Under the pieces are notes generated by a model. It saw only the letters and a list, made by a program, of their open reading frames with translations. It was not told the DNA's origin and searched no databases. A stretch of DNA of 64,000 bases from Klebsormidium nitens (lineage: Eukaryota > Plantae > Klebsormidiophyceae). Shown here one piece after another: positions 2,483-48,073 of the stretch (position 1 is the stretch's first letter; every line of letters begins with the position of its first letter). The position numbers and the translations under genes were made by a program. The stretch lies in assembly GCA_000708835.1 (NCBI GenBank), contig DF237333.1, positions 26,001 to 90,000 on the forward strand, given 5' to 3'.

Positions 2483-5400
2483 TTAACCCTCATCCTCTGC
2501 GTCGTAAGAGGGATCCACCGCCCCGACCATGAGCTTCACCAGCCAAATCTCAACCGTCATGTCAATTCCCTTCCGCTTGAACTCCTCAGCCTCCAGCTCG
2601 TAGTATGACGTGCAATCGATCACATCGCCAACCTCCGGACTCTTGTCCAACTTCTCCAAAAAGTGCTGCGCGCGCTGGTCACGTCCGACCTGCAGAGACA
2701 GCGGGGCGCACTTTTCAGTGAATATGTGAACGAAAACTTCTCAAAAAGTGGCTGCTTTAGCGTCTTTTTAGTCAGCGTGACATTGAAGATCATTCCCGGT
2801 TACTCACCACCACCTCGGGGGCTTTATCGAGTCAAATTCAAACAGCGAAGCATCAAAATATATCCCGTCTTGCAGGAACGGTTGGCGAAGAAAGATGTGA
2901 ACCACTTTTTGACTTTTTGAAACCAAGCAAACCAAACAGTGGTTCTCGCAGATTCAGTTCATCCACCAGTGATAGGAAGCTTAAACATTATGTCAAAATG
3001 AAAGCAGAAACAACTTTTCTGCGAATGCAATCAGTGTCTTTGCCCAAAAGGTCACCAACAATCCGCTCCACACACAGTCGCACCTCGCAAAGCTCTTTGA
3101 CAGCACAATTTGCGGGAAGCAACCTCACCTGCGCAAACTGGAAGGCAACTGCCTTAGGTCCATACTGCGGCGCAAGCTGCCTCCTCGCGTTTGCAATGAC
3201 CTGCAAGATCGCATCGCGCGGGCTATCTGACGGCTCCCCGTCTGTGATGGTGATAACTAGAACGGGCTTCGCCAGCTGACCGGACCGCGCCAGATTGAAA
3301 ACCACGGGCTCCAGCACGTGGCTCTGCATGCTGCCGGCGAGAGGAGTCAGGCCCTGGAAGCGGACTTGCTTCACGATGCCCTCAGCTTCCTGGGCATTCC
3401 TGCAAGCAAAAAGAAAGCAGCGGTTGAGGAGTTTGCATATGGAAGGATTGCAGATTTTGTACACAGATGCGCAGTAAGTAGTGCACAGGAATCGTATGCA
3501 AGTACTAAAGGGGCGCTCTGTAGACGAGTCTCACTGCGCTGATCAACATGATTCAGATTGAATGTGTATGCAAACAAGGCAGCAGTACACATAGAGCTGC
3601 AGAAGGGATCTTCGTCGCTCCAGCTTTGTGAATGCATTCCCAAAAGAGAGTCTCGAAAGTTATTTTACATAGACGTTGGGAGGGAAACAGACAAAGACCA
3701 AAGAGGCTCTGGAGCCAGGGAATCAGTTGCATTGTGAATTATTTGTAGAACCAAGACTGCTCGCTTCACCTGATGCCATTACCCTGGACGTTGGAGTTGA
3801 GGAAACGAATCAGGATGCCGTCTTGGTCGAACATGGTGGCCACTTCGGCAACTTTGCTGAGTACCAGCTTCAAGTCCTCAATGCGCTCGCCCTGCTCCTC
3901 AAAGGACATCGAAGAAGAGTCGTCTGCCAGGATGACGATATCGTAGAGCCCAAGGCAGGCCAGGTCGATGGCCAGCTCCTTAGGCATGCCCCACCTGCAG
4001 ATCAAAAAGAATATATGTTAAGAGTCTTGGTTAATATCAACCTTGGCAAACAGTAGAACATTCTGATCTGAAGAAACACTTGTGACAAAGCATGATGACT
4101 CCCAAAATCGACCTGAGATCAAGAGGTAACAAGTCGAAAGACACAAAGATGGAATATAAAGAGTAATAACAGAAAGCTGCCATATCGTGGTACAATGTTG
4201 AATCAAGTCGTTCAGATCCTCCAGTTGAACAAGCTCATGATCAGAAAACATATGGAACTTCGTTACTGCATGCAAACCAACTTTAGCATTCTGAACGCCT
4301 TGTTTGATAAGTTCGATTGGCAAGTTAAATCACTGAACAAACAACCATACAATGCAGACACCCCTCCATTTCCACTCTACCTGCAACCAACTTGCAAAAT
4401 GGTATATACATCAAAAGATGATACATGTATTACAACATGGACAAAAGACATGTAACTTTACCTAGCAGCCAGCGCATTGAAGTCCACCGTCTGCTCAATC
4501 CTTTGGGCAAGTGTTTGCAGCTGCTGAGGCTGGTAGAAGCGATGAAGCTGGTTGACCTGAACTATGCTCTGCAACTTGGCCAGAATGCCCTGGTTTTGGC
4601 CCTGGTTTTGGCCCTGAGCTTGGCCTGCATGCAAACGACAGAGCTTTAGGTTTATAAGGCGCGCTCAACTCTGGTAAAGAGCAATTGGTAAACAAAACGT
4701 AACACTCATGTTTCCTCCGGATCTCATCAAATTGCCTGCTCTTTATGCTTGTTACACCACTTCACACACGAGCAAGATCATCTGCCAAACATAAAGATGA
4801 TCAAGGGTGGTGGCTTTTTGACGACGCGAGCCAATGTGAAATGGTGGGAGAAGAACTGCATGCAGCGGAAAATGCAAACTGAATGCTTATTTCGAGGGGT
4901 AAACCGTTACAGGCAGGTAAGCTGACTACATTTAGACATCCATCAGAAAAAGATCAATTCGTAAAATATAGCCTTCAGTAGCAAACTTTTGAACAAAACC
5001 ACAATCAAGACCCGGTTTTAATGCAGCAAGTAAGAAGATTGCTGAGAACTCGTTTCAGAATCTTCTTGGATGACTCGAAATGGAACACTCGCAAATTCGA
5101 GCTCGATCGTGGAAGAGCTAGGCCAGAACCAATGTAGCTAACCTTGCAACTGAGGTACACCCATCTGGTTCTGGCCTTGACCTTGATTGTAAGCATGAGA
5201 GTACTGCTGCGGCTGACCGAACTGATTGTAACCCTGGGAGCCGTACTGTGGCGGCTGACCGTACTGCTGCAGGAACTGGCCTTGAGTCTGGTTATAGCCT
5301 TGAAAGTACGGTGGCGGCTGGCCATGCTGCTGCAAGAATTGAGCAGCCTGAGAGCCTCCATAACCCCCATACTTACCCTGCTGCCCATACTGGCCACCCT

Positions 5401-5860
5401 GTTGGCCGAACTGGCCCCCCTGCTGTCCCCCCTGCTGACCAAACTGGCCGCCCTGCTGGTTCCCCTGCTGTCCAAACTGACCATTCTGCTGTCCAAACTG
5501 GTTTCCCTGCTGACCGAACTGGCCGCCTTGCTGACCGAATTGGCCGCCTTGCTGACCAGACTGGCCGCCTTGCTGTCCAAACTGGCTACCCTGTTGTCCA
5601 AACTGGCCTCCTGGCTGTCCGTAACCACTCTGGTTTCCTTGCATGTTGGCACCCTGCATGCCTCCATGCTGCCCGGGCTGAGCACCATAGCCGGGAGCAG
5701 GATACGCTTGGGTCGGCCCCCCCGAGCTGGGTGGAGCACCGTATTGCTGCTGCTGCTGAGGGGCGGCCGGAGGCGCAGATGGAGTGAAGCCCCCCGGAGC
5801 GCCAGGTGGCGCCCCGGCAGGCCCCCCAGCAGGCTTCTGCAATTTGCTGGCAAGTCCCAT
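2483..5860 (-). CDS. von Willebrand factor A (vWA) domain protein with N-terminal Gly/Gln/Pro-rich low-complexity region
   Basis: Seen: exons 5860-5143, 4624-4462, 3994-3770, 3399-3129, 2689-2483, all GT-AG and phase-consistent (the exon-1 donor could alternatively be ~18 nt earlier, same phase). MIDAS DxSxS motif (ILADDSSSM), later ITITDGEP, C-terminus ...VKLMVGAVDPSYDAEDEG*. Family assignment from these motifs. Confidence 0.85.
5375..5620 (-). repeat. Coding tandem repeat, ~21-bp unit encoding GQQGGQF, about 10-11 degenerate copies
   Basis: Seen directly in ORF 5138-5860 (GQPGGQF GQQGSQF GQQGGQS GQQGGQF ...). Confidence 0.9.
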
Positions 5861-7481: not shown

Positions 7482-8941
7482 TTACACATTCTGCACGGCG
7501 ACGCTCTCCTCGCGGAGCTTTTGCAGTAACAGCAGTGCGGCACTCTGCTTGGCGCGCTTCAGCGATGGCAGCACTTCCCCAGCGGCACATGCCACGGTCT
7601 GCTCCTCGAAGATGACACGCGCCTCGTAGCCGTACCTGGCAGAGAGTGACGTAAGCGGTGCGTCAGCCAAAACATCCTTGAGAGGCCATGTGCTTGGCCG
7701 CAAAGACTGGAGCGGTTCGAAAGTCAAATGCATCTATACTAAGATACGGACCTCGCATGTGAAGAAGACAATTTCCAGCATCAAACTAGCTTATGGTACC
7801 AATTCGCCGACAAGTGCGGTTCAGCAAAAGATTTATTCATCGAAAAGGTCAACATCAGAAAGGTTAGGAGACTTCGGACAACTTGCTCAGGGTTTCGAAG
7901 CTGAAAGAGTAAGCCGTATCATCAGCTATGAGGCCCATCCGGGGGTTCGCAATCTCCTTCACATAAGCTTTACAAAGGGCGGGCAAGTGGATATTGCTCG
8001 ACTTACCTGAACGACGGCGCGGCCCCCTCCTTGACGACCTCGAAGTAGCGCGGCCGCGGCCAGCCGCGCTTGATGCACTCCTCGCGCAGCTTGAGCCGGA
8101 TCGCGCCGCGCCGCCGCTTGCGCTCCTCGGGGCTCAGGTCCGGGAGCGCGCGGCCCTCGCGCACTTCGGCTTCCTCCACCGATTGCAAATAGTCCAGGGC
8201 CTGCGGAACAGACGGAGACATACTTTCAGAAAGTGACGGTTGTTGGACGTATGATGGACGAAGGACTTGTCAACTTCGTCCTTCGTGTTGTCTGACGTCC
8301 TGTGAGCGACTTATGAGTGGACGAAGAGTCCACTCCGTTGGCTTCTTTTGAGTTGAAGTGAGAAGAACGTTATCCGGCATTTCGATCAGGAACGTCACGC
8401 TGTTCCGTCTCCCAAAAGCCCGCGGTATCCCTTACGTCTGAGACCAATGTCGCTGTTGTTGCCGGATGCACTGATCAACGGTGTGGCACTAATCAGAAAC
8501 TGAGAAATTGTAAGTGTCTGTTTGCCACCGCATCTCTCTTTTTGTTGACGTCCTCATGAAAAAGGCTTCCCTTTTCAGCGTCCAACAAACTGACCTCTTT
8601 GCAACCAATCGAACAAGTCAAAGCAGAGTACATCTTTACCGGCAAGACAGTTCTCGGTGTCGGTTTTTTCCTCTTCTCAGCCTCGCCTCAACCCCCCAAA
8701 AGAATCAGACCCCACCTACCTCTTTGGCGGCGACCTTGCGCGCGGCGTCGACGCGCATTCCGGTTCCGCTGGCGACCCGCTCTCCGTCCAGCGAGATGTC
8801 CACCCGGAACATGGTGCCCACTTTGGCGCTCGCGTAATCGATGTCCAGGCTGCGCCGCTGCGCGCGCTCCTGGAGCTCGCGCACAGGGTGCACGCGCAGC
8901 GTCTCCGGGGTCACGATCGGCTGCATCAGCCGGCGGAAGAC
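7482..8941 (-). CDS. DCL1: Dicer: two C-terminal dsRNA-binding domains (3 exons)
   Basis: Seen: HPVRELQERAQRRSLDIDY...VAAKE; KLREECIKRGWPRPRY...AKQSAALLLLQKL*. Confidence 0.88.
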
Positions 8942-11900
8942 CTGCCGGGGACGAGGAGGTGACGTCAGGAGCGGGGAAGAGTGACGTCAAAAGAGACGTG
9001 CTGATCAATAGCATCCGAATTTTGCATGTTCACTTGGATAGAGTTCGTAAGCTTCGCGCGAGGCGGCTCCTGCGCTGTGCGGGAATGACTTTGAGCCGAA
9101 AGGCTTCCAAAATTTGAGTAGACGCGAAAGGTTCGTGCTCATCCCATCAGAAAACGTTTGGTGGCTCCGCAAACTCTTTGCGGCAGAGGACGCCACTGAG
9201 AACTGCGGCGGCCGCTGTACAAACGCTCTATCTATTGGTGCTCAAAACTGGTTATAATTCAGTTGGTGTCAACCTCTTGAAGCACAGAACCAAAGCGTCA
9301 GCAGACCAGGCTGGTGGGCACTATCAAAAGCTCCGTGGAAGCAGCCTCACCTTCCAGACTTGGTCATGGTCGAGCTCCGAATCGAGGAGAACGGCGGCAG
9401 CCACGGACTCGACAAGGTCACCCAAAACCTGCAAGAATGGGCAGATCGTTCAGCTTTGATGCAGACGCGGTTGACGGGATCTTTACGGGAAAAGAGGACC
9501 TTGCTGAAGGATGGCCAGTCACCAAGCAATTGACGAGAACCGTGTGCCCTTTGAAGTCCACACAATCGGAGTGAGCCACGCTCAATTGAAGCGTTTCGGC
9601 TGTCATCTGCGCCGTCAATTATCCGGAATCTCACGAGCCAAGTGCCCCGAACTTTCTCACGATCGTTGGGTTTTCTTAGCTACATCCTTTCCAAGGCTGC
9701 GGCCAACAAAGTAAGGATTGGATCAACAAGGGACTAGGGAATCTTGTGTTTCGCAACAAAACAAAAGATTCAATCTGGAAGCACATCAGCTCCCGGCGAA
9801 CCTTTAGTATCACAATCTATCAACGCGGCCCCCAACAACTAGCAACGCGCGCGGCGCGCCCGCGCGCCCACCTTGGGCGCGTGCACGATGGCGATGCCGA
9901 AGGCGGCGCTGCCGAGGTCGGGGTCGCGCTCCGCGGCCGCGACACGCGCGAACTCGGTGACGTGGCGCAGCAGGTCGGAGGAGCCGTGACGTAAGTGGTG
10001 CTGGAAGCCGAAGCGCAGGCACAGCCGTGCAAAGCGCTCGTTGTTCACGGCCGCCTGCCGCAGGTACGTCAGCACGCCGGGGCTGATGTCTGCGGGTGAC
10101 GTCAGGCAAGAGGTTTCTTTCTGCGGCAAGACTTTTCGCGAAAAGACTTTGACTGACGGGCCGGGGTAAGTATGTTTCATTGCGCGCAGGGAAACTTGGT
10201 CTCCAGTAGCCGGAAGTGGCGTGGAGCCAGAGCCGTCATCAAACGACGGAAAGGTTATCCAGCTAACAACCGGCAAACATGTTTATTCTGGACGCATTGT
10301 GGGAGTCATTGTCAAGTTTCATGGAGGCAGATTGCACGTCGGTAGGAAGAAGAGACTGAATACAGTCACGTTGCAGGGCGCAATCGGCCTTCCAAAAGAT
10401 AGAAAGGGCCGCCCGAAAGAGTTAGGCCCGTAACGTTCTCAGGCCTTACCCTTGTGCTCGTCGAAGAAGTGGCGCGTGATGATCCAGTCGATGAGGGCGT
10501 CGCCCAGGAACTCGAGGCGCTGGTAGCACGCCACGTGGCTGCTCTCCATGTACGACGGGTGGGTCATCGCCTCCAGCAGCAGCGACATGCGCTTGAACCT
10601 GAGAGGGACGAGCGCACTGCTCTCTTACACCATTCCACAGAAGCACTTTCAAATGTTGGTTGCCAGCACGAAGAAAGTGGTTGTAGTGGTTGCGCGGCAT
10701 GAGATAGGATATGTCCTCATCTCCTCACAGCAAAGTATTTGCAGCTGTTGGCCAGAGCGTCGTTCGTCGAACTCTGCGCCAAAGTCTGTCGTTACTATTA
10801 GACCGGCAACTGTGAGAAACATAAGAACGCTTTTCGATCCTCCTATTGTGGTTTCTGAATGCTCACGAAGCGTCGCTCCTTCGCCGTCCGTCCAACTGCA
10901 ACCACGCACCAAGAGTCGCAACACAGACACCTGGTAACAGGACCAACAAAACCTAAGTATTGTTTAACTGCCCACCTGTATCCGATGGTCTCCTCTAGGT
11001 TTTCCAGCCCCGCGCGGCGCGCCTCGACCGCCGTCGCCTCCGGCGGCGCGCGCGCGCGCACGTCCAGCAGCCCCTGGTAGGGCGGGCTCTCGGTGATATT
11101 CCCCGGGGGAAGGTCCACCGGAATCCCCATGTAGCGCATGAAGTCCTCCGCGGCCGCGGGACCGCCCTCCACGTGGTGCACTCCGATCAGGGCTTCCACC
11201 ATGTCCGCCAGAAGTTTCCGGCCGAGCACCTGCGGCGNNNNNNNNNNNNNNNNNNNNNNNNNNNNNNNNNNNNNNNNNNNNNNNNNNNNNNNNNNNNNNN
11301 NNNNNNNNNNNNNNNNNNNNNNNNNNNNNNNNNNNNNNNNNNNNNNNNNNNNNNNNNNNNNNNNNNNNNNNNNNNNNNNNNNNNNNNNNNNNNNNNNNNN
11401 NNNNNNNNNNNNNNNNNNNNNNNNNNNNNNNNNNNNNNNNNNNNNNNNNNNNNNNNNNNNNNNNNNNNNNNNNNNNNNNNNNNNNNNNNNNNNNNNNNNN
11501 NNNNNNNNNNNNNNNNNNNNNNNNNNNNNNNNNNNNNNNNNNNNNNNNNNNNNNNNNNNNNNNNNNNNNNNNNNNNNNNNNNNNNNNNNNNNNNNNNNNN
11601 NNNNNNNNNNNNNNNNNNNNNNNNNNNNNNNNNNNNNNNNNNNNNNNNNNNNNNNNNNNNNNNNNNNNNNNNNNNNNNNNNNNNNNNNNNNNNNNNNNNN
11701 NNNNNNNNNNNNNNNNNNNNNNNNNNNNNNNNNNNNNNNNNNNNNNNNNNNNNNNNNNNNNNNNNNNNNNNNNNNNNNNNNNNNNNNNNNNNNNNNNNNN
11801 NNNNNNNNNNNNNNNNNNNNNNNNNNNNNNNNNNNNNNNNNNNNNNNNNNNNNNNNNNNNNNNNNNNNNNNNNNNNNNNNNNNNNNNNNNNNNNNNNNNN

Positions 11901-14900
11901 NNNNNGGAGGTTCAAACTTATTCGCTGCCGCGGGGCCGCCCTCCACGTGGTGCACTCCGATCAGGGCTTCCACCAGGTCCGCTAGAATTTCTGGCCCAGA
12001 ACCTGCGGCGGAACGGAAGGAAGTGGAATGGAATCGGGGCAAGACGTGAAGTTGCCTCGGCCGCGGGCCGCCTTCCACGTGGTGCACCCCGAGTAGGGCT
12101 TCCACCTTGTCCGCTAGAAGTTTCCGGCCGATCACCTGTGGCGGAACGGAACGAAGCGAAATGGAAACCAGGTGCGGAGAGAAACAGCGCCGTGTGCATG
12201 CAGTTCGATGAATCTGGAAGACCTCGACTAAGGACGTTCAAGAAGATTTTGAAGCTTTTGGCTGGAGAAGGATCTAGTTTCCGATGAAACGCAGTGACGT
12301 CTGCTCCGAATAAGGCGTCAAAGCGCTTGCCTGGCCCCCCAGAATGAAGTCTCCGAATCCCTCCCTCTGCTCCTCCCCCTTAGCCGCGCCGCCGGCCGCC
12401 TTGCCAGCCGTCCCCCCAAACCCCTGGCGGCTGTTGAGCCGCGCGCGACCGACCGCGGCCCTCCTCGCGCCGCCGAAACTCTGCCCTCCGCTGCTCCGAC
12501 TGCTCTCTCGTGCTTTTGGCTCAGTTTCCGGTGCCTTTGGACTCTTCTCCGATTTGTCTTGTTCCTCCGATTCGACCTTTTTCTCGGCGACGTTCTCAAC
12601 ATTTCCAGCCCCCACGTTGGCCGGGCTGAAGGCCTCGTTCACGCACCGCGTTCCTCCGGTTGCCGAATTAACCGAGCGGTCGCCTGTCTCTCCCGTGCCC
12701 TCTTCGGCTATCGTTTCGAGCCCGGTTGCCTTCCCCTTGGGAGCGCTCACGGCGACCGGGAACTTGGCATCGTAAGCACTGCTGGCCGCTCCCTCCTCTT
12801 CTCCGGTCGCCCCTTCCTCGTTTGCCTCTGCTTCCTCCTCGTTTTCCTCGTCCCCTTCTTCCTCCGATTCACTCCCCTCTTCGTCAACCTCTTCCTGACC
12901 TTCTTCTCCAACCCCTTCTAGACCCTCTTCCTCTTCGCTGCTCAGCTCTGCCTCCTCGATCGCGGCCTCATACTCATTCCGCGCGACACGTGCCTCGTCC
13001 TCAGCGCCGCCACGTGTCTCCTCTCCCCTGCGGGCGGCTGCCGCATCGTCCGGGTTTGCCACTGAGATCTTCTCTGTGTCCATACCCACTTTCTTGCCAT
13101 CAGAACTAACCGGCAAGCTTCTTGATTCCGCACCCGCTTTTACTACCGCCTTCGCTTGAAGTTGCGTCTCTTCTTGCTTCTGCTTCCCGTTCCCGCCCAA
13201 ATCCGGCCGCTCTTCATCGCCATTTTTACCAACCAGTACTTTTACCGTCTTCCCGTCGCTTCCGTCCTTCCTTTTCTTCGCATCCGACTCCGATTCCGTA
13301 CTTTGCTCCTCCCCATTCTTCCTCTTCTTCTCGTTCTCCGCTAGGATCTCCTTACTCGCCGCGGTTTCCCCACTCGCAGCAGTTTCTCCCACTCCATCTT
13401 TCTCCCCCACCTTCGGGACGCCGCTGGTCGTCTCGCTCCCCGCCGCGCGCGCGCGCGCCGCGGCCGCCTCCTCGCGCATCTTCTGCCACTTCTTGTACCG
13501 CGGCACGCGCTTCTTCTTCTCGCGCTTCGGCTTCCCGCGCGGCGGTGCGCGCCCGGCCGCGTGCCAGTTGCGCAGGTCGAACGCGCGCGTCAGCAGGAAC
13601 CCCTGCAAACCCCGCTCGAGCGCGCGCGCGTACAGCGCGTCGTTGGAAACCGTTGTATCGAACGTGGCGGTCAGCCAGCCCTCGTGCTGTTCTGGATGCG
13701 CGAAAAAGAGGTGGCGCCGTACAGCGAATTTGAGGTACGCGTCGCCCAGCATCTCCAGCCGCTCGTAGCTGTAGCCGGCCGCGCACGAGGTCGCCGTCAG
13801 GGCCTCCAGGATCTGCCACGTGGCACGCGGAGAGGTGTCTTGGCTGGTTTTCGTGCAGTCGTTTCAAGCAGCTTTGCGGACCGCTGGAAGGTTCAACGTC
13901 ACTCGCCCGGTCTTAAGAGCCTTCTACCAACCACGCTAACCACCCACAAAGAACTATCTTCTGTCGGGAAGGAGTTCACATAAGGCCTGCGCATACGTTA
14001 GCATCAACCGAAATGACGTTTATCTGCACCTGTTTCTGGTTTGGTCAGAATCTAACACTTGCCCGGGACAGCTCTTAGCCTCAACTCAAATCTGTCCGAT
14101 ATCTTCTGTCCCTTAAATCTCCAATGGCCCAATGGTGGCATGCACGCTGCTCCTCACCCTGCGCCGCAGCTTACCTGGACACGTCCGCGACAGCTCTTTT
14201 TAAATACCAGCTTTTTCCAATCCGCCCAAAACTTTTCCTTACAACCTTACGTGAGTTTTCTGTTGAAACCTTGATCCTCAACCGCCACCTTGGTGGCGTG
14301 CATGTTGCAACCCCGCCTTACGCCGAACTTCTTGATTTAGGTTTGCCCGAGACCCGTCTTTTCTCCTCCTACACTTCTTAAATCAATAGTTGAAACTAAA
14401 CTCAAATTTGAATGTTTTAAGTCACACCTTGGTGGCGTGCACGTTGCTCCCCGCCTTGCGCCGCAGCTTCTCCGCGAGCAGCACCTCCTCCAGGCGGTGC
14501 AGGAAGCTGGGCAGCCGCTGCGCGCCGCGGTGCGCGCGCGCGGACGAGCGTGCGCGCACCACGCACAGCTCCGCGGGGACTTCCAGCAGCCGCCGGCTCT
14601 CCTTGTCGGCGGCCGCGTCGAGCTTCTCTTCCTCCGCTTCCTGACATGGGCAGAAAAGAGCAGCAAGGAATGATGAGACGGCTGTTCGGTTTCTGCAGAG
14701 TGTTGTGTCTGGCGTTCTTGGTGTTCACTACCTTAGGCAGAAGTTAAACCTGGCCCCAAAAATGGAGACAAGGGGGGTAGACAGTCCTCCACAACGCTAA
14801 TGTGTCTGCTGGTGCTCGGTCTCATTCGAGATTCCCGTCTCTTCAGTTTATGACCGGCTAGCGCTTTACAGACACCTCAGCCATGGTGGATGGATGTTTA

Positions 14901-17900
14901 AATCGTGTTTAAAGGTCAAAGAGGCCTGGAACACTTTCAATCAGAGACAGTCAGCGGGAACAATCAGCTTTAAACCCCCCGTTGTAGAAATAGCAGTTCT
15001 TTGAACTGAGTTACCCTACCTGCTCGCTAGTGATCTCCTCTTTTTTCTCAAGCTTCGGCTTCAGCAGCGCGGCCGCCTCTGCGACGGCCTGACCCTCGTC
15101 GTAGGCCTCCTCCCGTTCCGAACCGCCGTCCGGACCATCTCCCGGGCACTCTGCTCGCGTATCATCAGCGGCCGGGGCGCTTGTCCGGGGACCGGTTTCT
15201 TCTGCCGGGGGCACGTTTGGTTTGACTGGAGAGAAAGGAAAGGCAACTTCCATTTTTAAATCGTTACTTTTGACATGCTTGCTTTCGTTTAGCACGAGCA
15301 GGGGAGTCGAGGATGCTGTCGAGACTTCATATTTTTGAGAGGGTGAGACCCGATTGAAACAATTATCTTTGTTTTGAACGCTGTTGCTCACCGTTTCGGG
15401 GCACGCCCCAGAGAATGATCTCGGATTCGCTCAGACAACAAAGGTTGTCTTGAACACATAGGGCACGGAACGTCAGCGGTTTTGAATGATCTACTAGAAG
15501 TGACCAGTTCTCAGGTCTCCGTGCAAGACTTCAACAAGACTCTCTAGTAGAACTTTCTTCATTCAGTGACTCCCACGATGAAACGTTCACAAAGGTGCTT
15601 GGGACAACTCATCGAGGTCCTGTGGAGCCCACTCATCGGAAGGTAAATCTGAATATGAAGGGGACTGAAACCTGGCAAAAACGACGTGTGTAACAAAACT
15701 GATCACCACTAAATTAAGTCTCCGCAAGATCCTCAAAAATACGGTGTCGAAACCTCACCAAAAGTCCTGCGGCGCCCACTTGGCAAACGGTTATACGGAT
15801 CTGAGAGGGTACTGAAACTCAGCGGAAAGGACGTCAGTCACAAATCTGATCACTATATTCCAAGTCTCCGTATAAGCTCCAAACATACGCTGTAGAAAGC
15901 TCACCGAGGTCCTGCGGCGCCCACTTGTAGGGGTCCCGGTGTGGGTTGAGCAGGCCCCGGGCGCGCTTCAGCGGCTTGCACTGTAACAGGGGCTGACGCG
16001 GATACGACATGGCCAGCTTGCGCCTGCGCGGGTTCGTAAGTTGCGTGAGAGTCGTTTGTAAGCCGAAGGAAATAGAAGAGATGCTTTCTATCATCAGATT
16101 TAAGAAATTGGTTCGATGACTTGGGTCGGAAGCCTCATATTACATAGCCTCGAGACGACACAAACGCAAGGATGAACGTGGTGGAGGAGATGAAGTAAGG
16201 AGCACTATACACGTGCTTGCCAAGTGTCTTCCCTGAAAATGAAGAGTCGTTTAAAAAAAGCCTTAGCCGCTTTCCGGCAACGGCGCCCTCCCTCTGGGAG
16301 ATGTACCATCACAAGGAAGCAACGTTTATTTGTACCAGCCAGTCAGTTCAAACTGATCTCATTGATCTCTTTTTGTTGAAAAGTCTCGCTTCTTCACCGC
16401 CGGATACAGTTGATACCTAACCAGAACTTTCTACCCAGCTGCATTACGAAGGACTTTGTAAGCCGGAACTTCCTGCCGACCCACTCACCTGGTGCGGTAG
16501 TACTCCGAGAAGGTCGTCCACTTGCGCCGCTCCTCCCGGTGCCGGTAGATGAACGGACTGTCCAAGCAGGTGTCCGTTAACACCCGGTACAGCCGGTAAT
16601 CTTTCTTGGTGTGAATAGCCGTCACCATCGTCTCCCCCTCCCTCAGTTCGGACACGTCCACCAGACCGTCCGCAGTCATCAGCTGTCCGGGAGCGACCCA
16701 CTCTATTCGCACCGAAGATTCCTTCTCCTCTCTTTCTGGCTCTTTCGCCTTTTCGGTGCCAGCGGAAAAGACAAACGGCGCGGGGGTTCCGCTCTCGCTT
16801 TGCACGGAAGCTTCCTCTTTCAGACGGTCGCGCAATTCCTGGCTGTCCGAAACCCCCAAACCCTCGCCCTCCGCGAGCGGCGTCGGCTCTTTCGCCGGCC
16901 GGATCGCGTCATTCACAACCGCCCAATCGATCTCCACGCCCGTCTCGTCCCCCTTATTCCCACCCGACCCTTCAGCGGGCAAATCGCTGGTGTGAACGGC
17001 CTCGGTCGCCGTTTTGGGCGGAGTTCTTTCCCTGAGCGGCAGCACGAGGTAGGCCTTTTCGGGCGACCAGTACGGCTCGACGGGCGGCGTCACGTGCTCC
17101 CAGTCCAGCACCCAGCCCATCAGCTTCACGTGGTACTGACGGGCTGCCTCCAACTGCACCGCCAGAAATTGGTCAGAGATATGGTCAAAGAGATATGGTC
17201 AAAGAGATATGGTCAAAGAGATATGGTCAGAGATAGAAAATTTGCAGCGAACAGATTGAACCGTGGAGTGTCTTGGAAATGGAAGGAGCTCATAAGTGAG
17301 AGCTTGGTGAAGAACAGCAAACAGGTTAGGCCCCAGGTATTGTCGGTTGTAAAAGGTGCAAGTGATTGGTAACAATTCTTCAACAATAGCATTCTGACAA
17401 GCTATCTACCCTGATAGAACACCGCGACCGGCGCATGCTTTATAGAAGTCGATTGCTCACCTTTCTAACACTCAAATCTTGACAACAGAAAACCACGTAA
17501 GCAAGAGAATTCCACAGCAAACAAGCAGCCCACTGCTTACATCAAGAAGCGGCAAAGCGGTGCCAACTCTTATTAAGTGTCCCACACCTGGAGTCTCCAT
17601 CTCTTAGACAGGTCCAGTTTATAGGTCCTTACCTGGCTCTTGCTCAAGTATTTACGACCGCCAAACCCTAGGTTCCCCCACACAGTCTCCACATCCTCCC
17701 CCCTCGGCATATATAGTTCCACGCTCATCGGCAAAATCGTGTCCAGGTTCTTTTCCGTCACCAGCACGAATCCGCCGGCATCCGCTTCCTCTGGATCGCC
17801 CCCCTCGCCGGACCGGAACGTGATCGAGTACGAGTGCACCGCGATCGTGTCGGGTCCCCGCAGACCCCGGGCAGAAATCGTTCCGCTTGGCTCTTCCGCT

Positions 17901-20900
17901 TCCGTGTGGCCCAGTCCTCCAGAACCAGCGGGCTTAGAATGAGCGAATTGTCCCTCCTCGTCTTTTTCAGCGGGGACCGTTTCTATTTCTGTAACTGCAA
18001 ATCCTTTCTTTACGGCGTCGTTCTTGAGGGAAGTCTCTGTCTCTTGCTCTCCCCCGGTGCTACGAACCGGTTCCTCCAAAAGCGCTTTCCGCGCGTTGAT
18101 ACCACTTTCTGCTTCCGGCGTTTCCGCTCGGGGCGGAACACCGGGCGCTGCTTTCTCGTCTTCAGCCAAGCTGGCCTTGAGCTGCATCAGGATCCGTTCA
18201 GTCTCCTCCTTTCCGTTCCGTTCAAAGACCGGAATGACGACCCCAAGCGCCTGCACTCCCCAGTCGGTCCCCCAGGTTACCTCAAACAAACCGACTTTCT
18301 TAACCTCCAATTTCGGCTCCTCTCTCTGCGCCGAGATGACTTCCGCTTCCGCTCTGCTCTCCGGCGTTCCGCTCCTGCTTTCCGTCGTTCTGCTGGAGGA
18401 AGATTCCGGCGAATTCCGGGGCATGCTCTGGCCGAGCCACTTTCCGTGCAGCAGCGTGGGGCGCTCTTCGTCGTAGACTGGCAGGTTGGGCTTGGGGGCG
18501 GGGTAATGCCAGCGGGTGAAGCGGAACGGGCGCCGCGCCGGAATCTCCTGAGCGGAACGAGGGAACCCAGTGTGAACATACCAATGGCAGTTGTGACATT
18601 AGCGAAGCGCGGGAGAAAGAGATATTTGACGCTATAGGGAGCATCCAAAAGATGAGACTCACGTTGGATTCTCTTCATCGAAATACTCCCGTCAAGAAAT
18701 CCTGGCTTGCTCTTTCTTGAAGGTTCGAGGTTTCCACTGCGGTCTATTAAGGTTTGTGTTTCAAAGCCAAACCAGAGTCGCAGTTAGGACAGGCGATGTG
18801 GCTTCTGCGGGTGAATATATAATACCTGAACCTTACCAGAGATAAGCACACTTTGAATCTTAGTAGTGGACGTTATCATCTGAAAACCAGATGAGCGTTC
18901 ACTGATCGTCTCCAAAGACTGTGTGCCAATTGATTGACAAAGTTGGCAGAACTGCGCAATCAAAGGTAAAGCGCGTGCCTTACAACTTGGCTCAGAGAGC
19001 GAGTGCTCATGTTTGCTGGATCAATATCCAGCGGTCACAACACTCGTTACTGCCCCACATTGGAATGGATTCGGAAGAAAAGCTTACGGCTTGTACAGGG
19101 TTCAGATTGGCTGCTAGCAGAAACAAAGGACTTCTTCTTATGCTCATTGAGCTCGAATGTCGCATGAACGCAAGAACTATAGCAAAGCGCTCGAAACAGA
19201 TAATCACCGATGCCCGGAACGGCAAGGTACGAGATTCCGCGAAGGAAACGGAAAGGTCCATCACGCCTGTCGCAATAATCCCGCAGCTTCTGTTCGGGTA
19301 GAAAATGCTGTTCGACTTCAAAACGTTGAGTCGACTTGGCCTTTGCCTATGCCGGAAATTCGTTGCAAAGACCGAGGCTTAAGAGCAAGGGATACGAATG
19401 GCACTGAGGACTCTGTGACTGTTCCCCGTTTGTTGCTCATCATTGCCGCTTTTCTTGCACGTCGAGAACATGTTGCAGTGGGCCCGATTACGTGAATTAG
19501 ATGGTCGTGACATTGATTGTCGGGCTACTCAGAAAGTGCTAAGAAGGGCAGCCGTGCGCTGTTTGAATACGGAACAGAATCAGATGTCTTGACAGCGGCA
19601 ATGAGCAGATGCGGTCTGCCGTGCGTTTTCTTGGAGCGCACTGTGGATTCAAAACGCGCCAACTCGACAAACTCGGAACGATATGGAGTCTGGTTTAAAG
19701 TACGGTAAGCCAAGTCTGAGCAAGCGTTAATGCAGGACTTAGGTTCAGATGAATGTTTTTGGTTTGGATTTGTCACGCAAAGATCTGCCACAAATCACTC
19801 AATGTCGAGACGAGGGGAAAGCAAGCTATTGCTCAAGAAAATTCTCAGATGTGTTCAAACCAAATGGGAAAGGTACACTCAATGATTAAAACCTGGCGGG
19901 ACAAGACAAAGGCTTCTCGTGCTTTTGAAAGTCCCCACGCTGCTGCAAAGGGCATCCAACCTCCAGTCAATCTTCACAATGGGCAGCAATCTGGTTGAAA
20001 CCTTCGGGATAAGCAGCGGAAGCGAAAATCGCAAAATAATTCAAGGCCCAAAGTAGCTGACAAATACTACTCCAGAGCTAGTTTGCTGAACTCGCGGCTC
20101 TGTAAGAAACTGTGCCATCATTTGCTCAATGTTCTTGGGAAGCCTTCACTCCCAGCAGTTTCACATCATGACCGCAAAGCGAGAGCTACAGTGGGCTCGT
20201 CATGAAACTAGAAATCAGTAAGTACATGCATCATTGGGCTCACAATATTGGCACCCTGAGTGGCACGCGGAAGTTTGAAAACGGGCAGCCAAGAAGCTTG
20301 TACTAGCCATCTGCTCGGAGCAAAATATCAGCTCATTGCAACACGTCCGGCTCAGTCGATGCACTCAAGTGATGCTGTGCCCTTTTGAAACAGAAGGCGG
20401 CCAAAGGAGGATTGAGTGCCGTTACATCAAGGCCAGACTGGAACCCCGCACTCTAAAGTCCTTCAAAAGACAGTGCAGACAGATCCGAAGAGCTCAGCCT
20501 GTGGTCCTGCCGGGCTCGAAGAGCAGCACCTCACTGCTGCCGGTACGCGGTCCAGTCAGCAGGCGCATCACTCATTTTTGCCCCAAACCTTGCAGAGGCT
20601 CAACTGGTATGTCTACAAGATTCTGTTGAGGAACCGTTCAGTTTCCAACTCGCGCGGTTTTTATCGAGGTCCACGTCATGAACTATACTTGATCGCATTC
20701 CTCACAACGTGTCCGTAACAAGTCAATGTAAACACCCATTCCCTTTGCGGCTCTGAGGCAATGCTGGGAAGTGATGGATCGCTAGGCTTGTTTCAAGCGA
20801 TCGCCGTCATCCTGGCCGCCGCGACTTTGACCAAGACCGCAAGAAAGAAGTGCAGAATGAGCTCTTAATTCAAGGCTAGTTGCATGCTTCCAGGCGGAGC

Positions 20901-23900
20901 GGTTCGCTGGAATGCACCATGAACGGGGCTATACTGAACACTCCTACCTTGTGCTCTCTCTTCCACGCCAAGAACATGATTGTGAACAGCGCAAAGCGTT
21001 CTGTGGTGCGTGACAATGCCACTGCTCAGCCCAGCCAGACTTGGAAGGCTTTGAACTTCAGCGTGAAAGTAACGTCCAGAATACCGCAATAGCAGATCGC
21101 GATTCACGACAACCTGCTGCCTTTTACGCAGGAAGCCAAATGATATTTTGAATTTCGAACTTTTGACGAAAACACTAATCCCGCCTGCGTTCAAAACTGC
21201 GAAAAGCGCAAAAGCGAGGCAAGGAATGGTAATCGTACTTGCCTAACCTCTTCCTCCAAGATCTGGAAAACGTGATTGATTTTACCCAGTTGACCTGGCT
21301 TTCCACGGTAACATTAGCCAGCTTCTAGAACCCAAAAACAAGCTATACATTTACAGGGCCTCACCTCGTCCTCCATCTTGGTACTGGGCAGCAGCCGGTC
21401 GGTGAGGGCCCTGTATTTGTGCAGCTGCCGGATCGCCTCCATCGCGGCCGCGCGCTTCGCCTCCGGCCGCGACGCGCGCGCGGGGCCTTCCACCGTGCGG
21501 ATGCGCGCGTTGATGGGCAGGGTGATGGTGCACGAGAAGCGCCCGGGGGATCCCTCGGGGAACTCGAACAGGGGGCGCAGGACGGTGAACCTGGCGGGGA
21601 GGAACTGCGCGTTAGAGTAGCAGTCAGGCGCCTGATGCGAGAAAGGACTCTGCGCAAATGTCCAGTTGAACTTCTCTTCTCAAGGAAAGAACAACACCTA
21701 AAGATGCTTCGGACTAATTCAAAAGCTGCTGACTTCACAAATGAGATGAGAGCAAGGCAAGGAGCCAGACAAATGGAGAGGGCGGGCTCATGAAGTGATC
21801 AAAGCGACCAAGCTATCCGTAGATAAGAAGGAAAGCTGTGCAAAAATGGATACGAAGATTGTGCGACGGGTTTACAAAGGCGCTACCTTAGAGGCACTTT
21901 AAAGAAGGAAATAGGCCACAGGTTGGAAGTTTTTCGGCAAGACAAACCCAAACACAGCTGTTGCAATCGGCTGACTGATACACCAGCCCGAAGCTTGATA
22001 TTCCGAAGAAAGAAACATCCCGTACTTTTCAACAGATTTTCAGTCGACTCTCATTACACTTACTGGTCTCCCGGCAGCTTGGCGCAGTAGCGGTGCAGCA
22101 GCCCGACCGCGGAGTCGCTGCTCGCGCGCGCTCCGGTTCCGTCCACGACGTACACTTCCGGTTCCGCTTCCGGCGCCTCCAGGCAGCTCTCGATGTCCTC
22201 CCGCGCCATCCGGTCCTCCGCCTGCTGCCGCATTAGGGCCTCGCTGGCTTGAATGGCCACCAGCATCGCCTCTTGCGCGTCGTTGTGCCTGCGCAAAACA
22301 GGGCCTCTCGGGGTGATCCTTCTGGTGACCCGTTATAGAGCACGGGGCGGAGAGGAAGCGGTTTGCCTACGTCGTAAGTCTCTCTGATAAAGTCTGCTCT
22401 ATTTCTCATCTGAGGGAACTCATGGACTGTTTCGGGACATGAGCCTGTCCGAGTCGAGAAACTCCCGAGTCAAGAAGACGAGCAAAGCAGCCGTTGAGAT
22501 TCGCGATATTCAGCCGGCAAGCGTCACCAATACACATGCCTGGCACGACCATCATACGATGCCAAATCTGCAAACGATCTCGCGCATACTTCAGCCGTCG
22601 CTCACCTCTCCACCATGAGAACGTAGTCCGACCCCGGGCGCCGCGCGCGGCCGCGCGACTGGATGTGGCCGCGCACAGTGGTCGGCAAGTCGAAGCGAAT
22701 CTGCAACACAAGATGTCGAGTTCTGAACCCTGCCAAATTCTTGCAATCACGCGGGCACATCGTTCTGAACAAGGCGCACCTGGGCTCCACCCCGGAGCCA
22801 AACCGGGGCCGGACGTGAGCAAGTTGCTTGGAAAAGTGGGGCGCGCTAGGCCCGGCCAGTTCGAGCCCAGTTTGCTTGCCCGGAGCGAGGTGCTCCAGCT
22901 CTGCCCCGGTTTGACTCCGGTTCGCAGCCAAGACGCCCTGAAACCCATCCCTCGTCTTTGTGACCCTCAAGAAAGCCTGTCCTTAGTCTTGCACGTCCAT
23001 GCAGAAGCAGACGTGTTTTGCAGACTTCACCGCTGTTTCCAAAAGCTGATTGTGGCCCGCATAAACGATATTCACATTGGAGTCTAAAGCAATCGCTTCC
23101 TCACCACGGAGTTGCAGCGCTGGATGTCGAGCCCCTCCTCCGCCACGTCCGTCGCGAAGAGCAGGGACACGTGGCCCGTCTGGAACCGTGCGATGATGCG
23201 CTGCTGCTCGTGGCTGTTCATGCTGCCCGCGCGCACGAGCGCGTCCAGCTGCGCGTCCGTCGGCGCCACGCCCACCTGCGCCTTCACGTTGCGGGACCAC
23301 TGCGAAAGAGATGAGAGGTCTGAAACGACGACGAGAAGAGCACATACGTGCTCCGAAAGTGGAGAGCTTGAGCCTGATGTTCAACTCCGTGATCTTTTGA
23401 GGTTAGAGATGCTGGTTGATACGGATTGCCTTCAGGGGGGCATTGAACAGCAACGAGGAGAATTAGTGCACCTTAAGTAGAGGGCGTGACCTCTGGCTTG
23501 AGATTGCAACTTTGTCAAGTGGACCGTCTTCAAATTAGTCAGGGCTGTTTGACTTTTCCCTCCTGTAACTGTTTTTGTTTCTTTGAGGCGGCGCCTCTGT
23601 CTACGAGGTACTCAGTTTTTGGCCTTCACAAACTAGAGCACCTTGTGAAGAATTGGCTGTACATGCACGCAGAAAGGAGCCGTCTTTAATCCCTGGCGTC
23701 AGACGACAGAACGTCTGAGCCTATGCTCAGACCTTGTGTCTTTCTTGCCACAGGAGAACTCGTCGCGCCCCTAAGAATGTTTGCGTCGTGTGACAATAAC
23801 AAAGGCTTCCCCCGAGCACGTTAACAAATCGGAAAAATCCTGTTGACAAGGCCACGTCCGTAGAACTGCAAGCTCTCGAAGCAGAAGAATATTCTGCCTG

Positions 23901-26900
23901 TAGCAAACATGGGGGTTCGGAAGAAGAGCTAGCTTCCATTCGGCCGAGTTTGTGCGGAACAGGCTAGGTCGGGGGACATGCCGTGCCGCATGAAGCTTCC
24001 ACAATATTGTACAATTTTGCAAGGAACCCATCGTCGGACAGGAGAATCCACGTTGGTGAACAAGATCTGGCCATATTTAGAAAGGTATTGGATCATGTGA
24101 CCTTGGAGGGATTATTAATCTGGGCAGGTACGGCGCCAAACGCCTTGTGAGGACGTATTTGGGTTTCAAAAATGCATCCTACTGACGAAAACCGAAGTTG
24201 GATGGAGCACGGCAAAGAGAGTTGTGGTCACGCACTACTTTGAAGTATTCGACTTTGTGATTGACAATTGAGGTACCGAAGAAACTCTATTCAATCCAAC
24301 AATATCGACAACAAGCCATATATTTACCTCGTGAGAGTTCCTATAGTGTATCGAGGACAAAAACTGAACGGCGCGCACGTGACGAGCGACGGTGGCATCA
24401 GATCGCACTCGCCCTCCCTTGGCAACTGCCGTGGACTCTTGCATCTTCATCGCCACCGTTGGATTGAGTTTTCATCTCATACGAACTTCAGAAGGAAAGT
24501 ATATGCAAGTTCCGCCATCGTTTGATTCCTTGAAAGAAAACGAAAAGAGGCAACCGCCACATTAGCCAAAGTGACGGACCCAATGAGCCTAACCCAAATG
24601 GAACTCCCACCTTGCTGTGTCCGGTCAGAGCTGCGGCGCGCAGTCCCCCCATTGACGTCATGGTCGTCAGCAGGTCCGTCAGCACTTGCGCGGTCAGCAC
24701 CCGGCTGACGAACACGATACACTTGGCGCTCTCTGGGCGCTCCTCTTCCCCGGTCACTTCTTCGTCTCCCCCGGGCAGGTCCTGGCTGTCCACCGTCTCA
24801 GAATGGGAGTCCTCGGGGGATCCCCTGGGCGGAGGGGGATCCCCCAAGCCCCCAACGCCCTTGCCCTGATCCGAAGCTTGGTTACTTTCCGGAGCGCCTT
24901 CTGTGACTATTTCTGGGGGGAATTCTGCGGTGCTAGTGGCCCCCCCCGGAGGAAAGGGCGCATCGACGGCTGTGGGTGTCCCCTCGGGCTCGGGCGTAGC
25001 GCGGATCTTGTCCACGTGGCGGCAGAGCGCGGCCCACACGTGGCGGCGATTGCGGAAGTGGTACTTGTTGAGCTGGCGGAGGAGTTGGGCGACCTTGGTG
25101 GAGAGGAGCCCGCCCTCGATCAGCCGCGGCAAGTCGCACTCATCTGCGCCACAAGGATCGAAGTAGGGGATATGTCTCAGAAATGAAAGCAAAGTGTGTA
25201 ACAAATAGCTCAAGGTAAAGCCGACCTCAAGAAAGAGAAGCGACCGTTGTCTTACATGTAAACCAAAGTGAAAAGGAAATCTGCTTTTTGAAACTCGACG
25301 CCACGGCAGTCTCCTGCTCAGAGTAAGTAAGTCCTGAAGAGGTTTCTGGCGCGTCTGAGTTGGCGCCATTGAGCTCACTTCACCGCAGTCTCGAACACAA
25401 AAAGGACGCAATGATCCTGAGGGCGAACATGTTCTCGGCCGAATTTTCGGGTCCGAACGAAAAGGAAGGGAATGCGCGGCGGACGAAGAAGAGTACGGGG
25501 AGCGGGAACCTCCATCCATTAGGCAGTGAAAAGGTAGAGGACCGAAATCAGCCTCGCTTGAATGCAATACGGGCTGCATCAAAGAAGATAGAGCTGCTTG
25601 TTGAGCGAGCTTTACTTTCAATCAGAATAAATTTCTGCTCTGAAGAAACCTATCCTCGACCGGCTAGCAAGAGGGCTTGCCCAACACCACTGCTGCGACT
25701 CCACAGATATTGGCTTCAGAGTTACAGCCCAACATTCTATTGCGCAGACAAGCACAACAGCTGACGTCATCCACGCCGTTCTGAGCAAATCCAAAAAAGC
25801 AACCAGCGAGAATACAGCGCGAACATAAGGGCCGGCTATGGGAGCCTTTCAGGTTGAATCCGACGTATTATCGTACAAGCGCGTGGACATGAGAACCCTT
25901 ACACAGGACTTCATAGCATGAGAAGAAAAGCACAGAATACCTTGCCGGGATGATTCCGAAGTTAGTAGACGGGGAGGCGATTCGACTGCCTCCCTGCTGG
26001 AGGCCACCTCAAGCAGTGACGTCAAAGGACGCAACGTGCGACCTGAAGAGTGTTCCCAATAATCTAACAAAGTGCTTTGGAAACAGCTCTGAAAACCTTT
26101 GGAAACAGCCCTGAAAACCCAATCTTGTGCATCATACGAGGTCATCGAACATTAAAAGACGAGGCCGTTTGAGCAACCTTCAGAGTGTCTACGGGCAAAA
26201 TATAGAGTAAAAGCTACTATGAGCATGTTAAAGTTGGCAAATACATGCGGCTAAGTGCCGTGACAGTGTGGACGGTTTTCTTGCAACGGAAAAGACATGA
26301 AACGCACAAGAGACTTCGGATCGACAAGTGTGCGGTTATCAGCCAGTCTTTTCTGTGTGACTGGTTGGTTCGTCGTGCCCGACATGAGGTGCCTCGCGAT
26401 CGACCTTGAACTCAATTTTCTACCTCGTTTCTCTAAAGGAAGATTTTGAGGGGCTGCAGGTCACCCGGGAAGTAACCAACATGGCTTCGGATAGCTAGGA
26501 CAGACCCGTCGTGAGCCCAGAACTTCTGAGCCCAGTCACAGCGTCGTCAGAGCCGCTGTCTCGCCACAAGGGCCAGAATGTCGGTGCTAAAAGAGGTTCA
26601 TAAACGACACATGAGCTGTAAAGCTGCAAAATTGGATATCGTCTTGCGGCCACAAGCACTGGGTCACTTCAAGAAGAGAACCCGAAAGGAGTGGATAGAT
26701 GGCGATCAGAAGAAACACTGAGGGGCAATATTTTTCTGTGCCGTTTTCACTGCCATTTCGTAGGGGTCCAACGACAGGTCAGCTTCTAGCAACACGCCAC
26801 GAGTCTCGCACGAATTGCACAAGCACAAGCCCTCTGTGACCACTTCGCCTCGTCATGCTTCTCAAAACGTCGCTCCAGATTCATGATGCTAGAAGGCGCC

Positions 26901-47771: not shown

Positions 47772-47978
47772 CCTGGAGGGAGTGTAGATAGAGTAGAGCT
47801 TACATTAGTTGATAGATGATTGCTGGTAACTTTGACCATTTCGTTCTTCAATCATTGAATTAGAAGTAGGCTAGATCCGTCATTTGCTGCAATTAGCCTA
47901 CTTCTAATTCAATGATTGAAGAACGAAATGGTCAAAACTACCAGCGATCATGTCTCTCAACTAGCTCTCCCACCAGGG
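47772..47978 (-). ncRNA. Long hairpin: candidate MIRNA/hpRNA precursor (alternatively a foldback/MITE remnant)
   Basis: Seen: 58-nt arms 47816-47873 and 47894-47951 with 3 differences (43-bp perfect core), 20-nt loop; bulged pairing extends to ~47772/47978. Two of the three differences are G:U on the minus strand. Confidence 0.6.
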
Positions 47979-48073
47979 TTGTCTTCAGGTTTACCGCTTT
48001 AAAGCCCGTAGGTGAGACAGCTACACGTACTTCACCACTTCGAGGTCACGAATTGAGGATGTAGTTATCTGGC

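Follow-up and report, generated by a model that had tools for sequence, protein, structure and literature searches.

A GC-rich foldback, apparently lineage-specific, in a spliced intron of a Dicer-like gene of the alga Klebsormidium nitens

Within a stretch of 64,000 nucleotides (nt) from the streptophyte alga Klebsormidium nitens (contig DF237333.1 of assembly GCA_000708835.1, positions 26,001 to 90,000; hereafter the window, with position 1 as its first letter), the minus strand carries a Dicer-like gene, one of whose introns contains a GC-rich imperfect inverted repeat. We report that this foldback is probably a lineage-specific feature that is spliced out with the intron and has no demonstrated function. 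An earlier reading of the letters by a model, to which we refer as the original prediction, had proposed the repeat as a candidate self-regulatory intronic microRNA (miRNA), through which Dicer would cut its own pre-mRNA.

Results

The foldback occupies 22771-22940 on the minus strand (170 nt, 67.6% GC), corresponding to positions 165-334 of its host intron, and is made up of a long stem of 37 pairs, six of them G:U, and an apex of ~93 nt. From base to tip, the minus-strand fold comprises a lower stem of 16 pairs, an AA/GG internal loop, a core of 18 bp and the apical region, which branches into three small hairpins and forms no simple loop. The two core arms, CCGGAGUCAAACCGGGGC on the 5′ side of the transcript (22903-22920, minus strand) and GCCCCGGUUUGGCUCCGG on its 3′ side (22792-22809, minus strand), are complementary at all but one position, which reads C·A on the plus strand and G:U on the minus strand, so that the core is completely paired on the transcript strand only, just as originally predicted. 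Outside the core complementarity is poor, amounting to 71% over arms of 49 nt at the DNA level. Shuffled versions of the window are expected to contain 0.05 matches to the arm pattern; the window itself contains two, namely both arms themselves. The stem is retained when the complete intron is folded.

As the original prediction had proposed, both strands were folded and compared with dinucleotide shuffles, 200 for each strand. The minus (transcript) strand has a minimum free energy (MFE) of -96.7 kcal/mol (z -5.07), which none of its 200 shuffles equals, and the plus strand has one of -86.8 kcal/mol (z -3.28), which is equalled by a single shuffle. As a second background, every 170-nt segment of the 64 kb was folded (n=5040, from both strands at a step of 25), and the energies were regressed against GC content. 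Taken in its exact frame, the foldback has a GC-adjusted z of -3.8 for the minus strand and of -2.5 for the plus strand. Its MFE index (MFEI) is 0.84, compared to a mean of 0.52 (standard deviation 0.09) across the window. The foldback is clearly non-random, and both sequence and folding agree with the description given in the original prediction, that of a GC-rich imperfect hairpin of ~170 nt in the middle of a 404-nt Dicer intron.

The structure is only weakly specific to the transcript strand. The original prediction had regarded many of the differences flanking the core as wobbles on that strand, which does not hold for the 60-nt arms as a whole: when these are compared, 11 differences are of the transversion type, as against five of the G:U and three of the A·C type. 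The advantage of the minus strand, 9.9 kcal/mol, is equalled or surpassed, in either direction, in 30% of all segments. We therefore discarded the argument from wobbles and strand bias, given that the bias is not significant and the asymmetry ordinary for this window.

The intron that hosts the foldback (22701-23104, minus strand, GT..AG, 404 nt) is real and efficiently spliced. The RNA evidence consists of contigs assembled at k=31 from 24 runs, a form in which 20-24-nt RNAs, RNA ends and RNA levels are not representable. Contigs from three of these runs (X1, X3 and X4), belonging to two studies, skip 404 nt exactly at the 22700/23105 joint, and the skipped sequence reads CT..AC on the plus strand, equivalent to GT..AG on the minus strand. 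Splicing joins an upstream exon of 65 amino acids (aa), which belongs to the Helicase_C region and ends in ...DIQRCNSV (23105-23299, minus strand), in frame to a downstream exon of 32 aa, which begins with IRFDLPTTVRGHIQSRGRAR and contains helicase motif VI (22605-22700, minus strand), yielding ...DIQRCNSV/IRFDLPTTVRGHIQSRGRAR... in the spliced product. Between the 5′ splice site and the foldback lie 164 nt, and a further 70 nt separate the foldback from the 3′ splice site. While the intron as a whole has a GC content of 57%, simple arithmetic gives ~49% for the part outside the foldback. Four introns of the host gene are supported by RNA, with lengths of 317-1311 nt, a range that includes the 404 nt of the host intron. 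Among the contigs of the listed runs, there is none over the foldback and none with an end at the intron borders. RNA contigs of low depth (2-3x) occur at 23809-24003 and 25191-25483, within two other introns of the Dicer-like gene, whereas the intron with the foldback contains none; they could stem from residual pre-mRNA or from small transcripts of their own.

The Dicer-like nature of the host gene is confirmed by several sequence comparisons. For the open reading frame (ORF) of its PAZ-like region (16485-17159, minus strand), the nearest Atlas cluster is 'Dicer homolog 1-like' from Streptophyta and the sole PDB match is Arabidopsis DCL1 (7ELD, E 1.3e-4). The helicase exon matches Arabidopsis DCL1 (AtDCL1; E 1.7e-7) better than DCL4 (E 4.2e-4), and the alignment of the Helicase_C region reaches AtDCL1 residue 744.

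To place the foldback in its evolutionary context, we compared the intron with those of related algae. A word search with the PAZ-region ORF yielded five fragments, which represent three loci (52 kb in total): L001, from a Logan assembly, with 87% aa identity, and L002 and L003, both from one JGI metagenome, with 57%. A phmmer search with the same ORF recovered four of the five known fragments and no annotated full-length relative, and a protein word search with the exon adjoining the intron found L002 only. L001 and L002 share the intron at the identical codon boundary and phase (...AAC TCC GTG / GTGAG ... CAG / ATC CGC TTC GAC), whereas L003 stops short of the helicase region, its alignment with L002 ending upstream, and is uninformative for the host intron. 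The orthologous introns of L001 and L002 contain neither the hairpin nor another strong one, and they show no similarity to the foldback. They measure 311 nt (L001; 43% GC) and 402 nt (L002; 44% GC) and fold with -26 and -28 kcal/mol per 100 nt, respectively, compared to -40 kcal/mol per 100 nt for the window intron. Nucleotide identity between the window and L001 is 87-95% in the exons, while introns align over just 14-37 nt beside the splice sites. With exons conserved and introns diverged to this extent, the neutral sequence of the intron has evidently been replaced, and an element under constraint should be conspicuous; in the alignment of the window with L001, no such element is apparent within the intron. 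A sliding fold of the transcript strands of L001-L003 gave nothing below z -2.6, and thus no substitute hairpin in these loci.

Judging from these sequences, the foldback appears to be specific to this species or to a narrow lineage. The original prediction had considered an ancestral Dicer loop possible; a loop shared with land plants is contradicted by the absence of the hairpin from the orthologous introns of L001 and L002, and by the lack of any hairpin below the above z value in L001-L003.

Membership in a dispersed repeat family had been named in the original prediction as a finding that would count against it. Neither in the 64-kb window nor in the 52 kb of related loci is there a second copy of the arms or of the 93-nt centre, so that this objection finds no support there. 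None of the findings that the original prediction named as refuting was obtained, and none that would count as positive support. In metagenome contigs, a degenerate version of the 18-mer arm has 58 single matches, which is roughly the number expected by chance, and none of them includes both arms or similarity beyond ~32 nt. At the foldback itself there is no convincing target-site duplication, its termini are imperfectly complementary, and its centre has no G-rich core of telomere-like sequence. An Rfam scan of 20000-26000 (E <= 1) returned no family match, with a single chance match to a long non-coding RNA lying outside the intron. An origin from a tRNA or a short interspersed nuclear element was considered and rejected, there being no tRNA-like gene in the 20-26 kb region. 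Plant-style target sites (score <= 4.5) for 21-mers from the arms are absent elsewhere in the 64 kb, Dicer exons included, which leaves no miR162-like self-targeting within reach. The arm sequences were also not found in the full text of published papers.

A different hairpin ranks first in the 64 kb, 25 kb away from the Dicer-intron foldback. It is AT-rich and near-perfect (47811-47956, in the context 47790-47980), with 63-nt arms that are 92% complementary and a loop of 20 nt, and its MFE of -107.7 kcal/mol corresponds to z -17 against shuffles and z ~ -8.4 against the background, equally on both strands. There is no sequence similarity between the two structures. As a candidate for a hairpin RNA or a foldback element, 47811-47956 is far better than the foldback in the Dicer intron.

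Discussion

Taken together, the data point with fair probability to an intronic foldback that is specific to the lineage, is lost with the intron on splicing and lacks a demonstrated function. According to this interpretation, a GC-rich imperfect inverted repeat would have arisen in the intron once the lineage had separated from its nearest sampled relative, probably by a local inverted duplication or by insertion of a small foldback-type element; it would be transcribed within the Dicer-like pre-mRNA and then removed with the intron by normal splicing. The GC island that it forms, 67.6% in an intron of otherwise ~49%, is in keeping with an insertion or with duplicated exon-like sequence. We infer that the foldback is selectively neutral, as we infer its manner of origin. 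Since the window alone holds two strong foldbacks, the coincidental occurrence of one of them in the ~20 kb of Dicer introns is not far-fetched.

Several points weigh against this interpretation. The foldback is the second most structured locus in the 64 kb, with a z value (-5.07) well beyond shuffles, and after correction for G+U content the transcript-strand fold is still somewhat better than expected (z -1.75). Its stem geometry, with ~16 pairs in the lower stem followed by a duplex region of ~21 nt, would suit a substrate of a plant-type DCL1. In addition, the DCL1 genes of Arabidopsis and Physcomitrium each acquired an intronic MIRNA independently (PMC4429486, PMC4053937, PMC10721683), and because MIR838 is reported to be specific to Arabidopsis, the missing conservation of the algal foldback is compatible with a function.

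The main alternative is that the foldback is a young, species-specific precursor of an intronic miRNA or hairpin RNA, providing a Dicer-like feedback convergent with MIR838 and MIR1047. Competing with splicing, the Dicer-like protein would then cleave its own pre-mRNA at the foldback and thereby lower the level of its own mRNA. We consider this unlikely. In its favour, there is a sense-strand hairpin in a confirmed intron of a DCL1-like gene, as one would look for in a DCL1 loop, and this hairpin folds with z -5.07 and an MFEI of 0.84. For plant pre-miRNAs an MFEI of 0.85 is a common cut-off, and the foldback thus falls just under it, which counts on the opposing side. The plant MIRNA criteria of Axtell & Meyers 2018 are said to demand a foldback of <=300 nt and a duplex with <=5 mismatches, of which <=3 in asymmetric bulges; they reportedly also call for a duplex free of secondary stems, and for miRNA and miRNA* to be precisely processed in independent small-RNA libraries. 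Within the 170-nt foldback, the core with its one G:U pair and the two symmetric AA/GG mismatches constitute a candidate 21-nt duplex, with ~16 pairs below it and the branched part above it, so that the agreement is one of structure only. This predicted stem geometry suggests a suitability for base-to-loop processing. No similarity to a catalogued miRNA family was found in Rfam, which is not a defining trait for a novel MIRNA.

Independent origins of such loops have precedent, with the moss loop having been tested functionally (PMC4429486, PMC10721683, PMC11799827), and in Chlamydomonas, miRNAs derive mostly from introns or untranslated regions (UTRs) of coding RNAs (PMC4817775). Against a feedback loop stand the branched apical region, the lack of a significant strand bias and of a trans target in the window, and the missing conservation, with the hairpin absent from two orthologous introns and no substitute in the related Dicer loci. 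Moreover, the location in a Dicer gene is possibly a coincidence, having been picked afterwards among many hairpins. The foldback therefore resembles a feedback-loop candidate in its anatomy only, that is, in its sense strand, its real intron, its DCL1-like host and its stem geometry. That it represents a third independent origin of Dicer self-regulation through an intronic hairpin, this time in a streptophyte alga, would seem distinctly improbable to us.

Somewhat more doubtful than a feedback loop, and in our view improbable, is that the foldback is a copy of a dispersed family of small foldback elements, resembling miniature inverted-repeat transposable elements (MITEs), which happened to land in the Dicer intron. 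Its size of 170 nt, the compositional contrast with its surroundings and its absence from the orthologous introns would all fit an insertion, and it shares with intronic MITE or foldback elements the character of a short, compositionally distinct inverted repeat missing from orthologous sites. Unlike MITEs, it has no further copies in the searched sequence, arms and 93-nt centre being single-copy in the window and the related loci, and the 58 single 18-mer matches in metagenomes, none beyond ~32 nt, are about what chance would produce. Likewise, its terminal arm parts are poorly complementary at the DNA level, giving no clean terminal inverted repeats, and a convincing target-site duplication is lacking. 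Very improbable, finally, is a splicing-assisting structure that joins the intron halves and shortens the effective distance between 5′ splice site and branch point: the stem would loop out 170 of the 404 nt while both splice sites and the last 70 nt would stay free, and the intron is efficiently spliced, but the relatives have no such structure in the orthologous intron (311 and 402 nt), which they splice nonetheless, and 404 nt is an ordinary length among the four introns seen in RNA (317-1311 nt).

The premise of the original prediction, that DCL1 genes of land plants carry intronic MIRNAs, is borne out by the literature: MIR838 lies in intron 14 of AtDCL1 and miR1047 in intron 7 of Physcomitrium DCL1 (PpDCL1), and as both sequence and position differ, they have independent origins (PMC4429486). 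miR838 is seemingly specific to Arabidopsis (PMC4053937). Like MIR838, the algal foldback is a lineage-specific hairpin on the sense strand of an intron, its host being a DCL1-like gene (PMC4053937, PMC4429486). It differs in residing in another intron, one that interrupts the Helicase_C region, and in lacking sequence similarity, as seen from the absence of an Rfam match; MIR838, for its part, is documented by sequenced small RNAs and by truncated transcripts of DCL1. With MIR1047 (intron 7 of PpDCL1a), the foldback has in common that it is an intronic hairpin, here in a DCL1-like gene, MIR1047 being one that competes with splicing, but a common descent with the moss locus is contradicted by the nearer relatives, which have no foldback. 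The original prediction likewise counted the host intron as intron 7, from the first exon identified in it; an agreement in number of this kind is no test of positional homology, and the upstream exons are too short for placement by ORFs. Processing of DCL1 intronic hairpins has been described as competing with splicing (PMC10721683), for the miR1047 loop a deletion served as the functional test (Arif et al. 2022, as cited in PMC11799827 and PMC10721683), and moss without the loop is hypersensitive to salt (PMC11799827). Among algae, the DCL3-dependent miRNAs of Chlamydomonas (PMC4817775) are similar in coming from GC-rich hairpins embedded in introns of protein-coding pre-mRNAs; they differ in being defined by small-RNA reads and by their loss in a dcl3 mutant, and their hosts are not Dicer genes.

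An analogous form of feedback exists in Drosha-DGCR8 autoregulation, in which the processing enzyme cuts hairpins in the DGCR8 mRNA. As in the proposed Dicer loop, an enzyme there cuts a hairpin in a transcript of its own complex, but the system is an animal one, and its hairpins are located in the 5′ UTR and the coding region, not in an intron, and are conserved.

Klebsormidium belongs to the earliest-branching class reported to have DCL1, and in 2021 small-RNA knowledge in this lineage was described as almost non-existent (PMC7994812); a published small-RNA catalogue for it was not found among the papers searched. If the foldback were after all a feedback element, the DCL1 pre-mRNA would appear as a recurrent evolutionary trap for negative-feedback hairpins, active already before land plants, and a further independent case from an alga would suggest that such feedback comes about easily in any lineage with a DCL1-type enzyme, besides offering a handle on miRNA biogenesis in a little-studied lineage. 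For the present, the value of the foldback, which is real but unconserved, is that of a cheap and well-defined target for small-RNA work rather than that of a finding.

Other features of the window

The identified part of the Dicer-like gene extends over 7482-25145 on the minus strand, and its mRNA continues for at least 1.5 kb further in the 5′ direction. Pfam assigns, all on the minus strand, a Helicase_C domain (23105-23287), a Dicer_dimer domain (21314-21493), a Ribonuclease_3 domain (12274-13752) and two double-stranded RNA-binding domains (dsrm; 8705-8926 and 7482-7733); a further RNase III part lies at ~11159-12143. RNA contigs define further exons at 21364-21588, 22062-22287 and 24611-25145, on the same strand. 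The first RNase III exon (12274-13752) is one open frame that runs on into ~400 aa of acidic low-complexity sequence rich in Lys, Glu, Ala and Gly, and a second low-complexity insert, whose length differs from those in L001 and L002, is found in the helicase exon 24611-25145.

An exon with an RNase III signature (..LLADMVEALIGVHHVEGGP..) is present in three copies (11159-11237, 11933-12011 and 12065-12143), which are 76-89% identical and flank an assembly gap of 668 nt (N, 11238-11905). Only the copy at 11159-11237 runs on into AAAEDFMRYMGI, as happens in the relatives, and L002 and L003 have one copy each; the triple exon could reflect a genuine local triplication or else an error of assembly. 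From the PAZ region onward, the loci L002 and L003 share 72-83% identity for kilobases, in introns as well as exons; upstream, collinearity is lost, and L003 seemingly contains ~6 kb of extra sequence there.

Elsewhere in the window, two pairs of direct repeats, 46008-46178/54788-54958 (171 nt) and 46713-46773/57198-57258, are 89% and 95% identical, respectively, and the first pair ends at a GT donor. Both pairs resemble exons from genes duplicated in tandem at a spacing of 8.8-10.5 kb rather than mobile elements, and the 171-nt repeat proved to be a duplicated exon. Between these repeats, a 292-aa open frame on the minus strand (49583-50461) encodes a predicted right-handed beta-helix domain (PF13229). 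The Atlas clusters closest to it come from bacteria without exception (Bacteroidota, Acidobacteriota and Pseudomonadota), and this nuclear gene of the alga may therefore have a bacterial ancestor. Near the start of the window, at 5355-5642, there is a tandem array with a period of 21 nt and 11 overlapping copies, whose minus strand would encode a Gly/Gln-rich heptad repeat.

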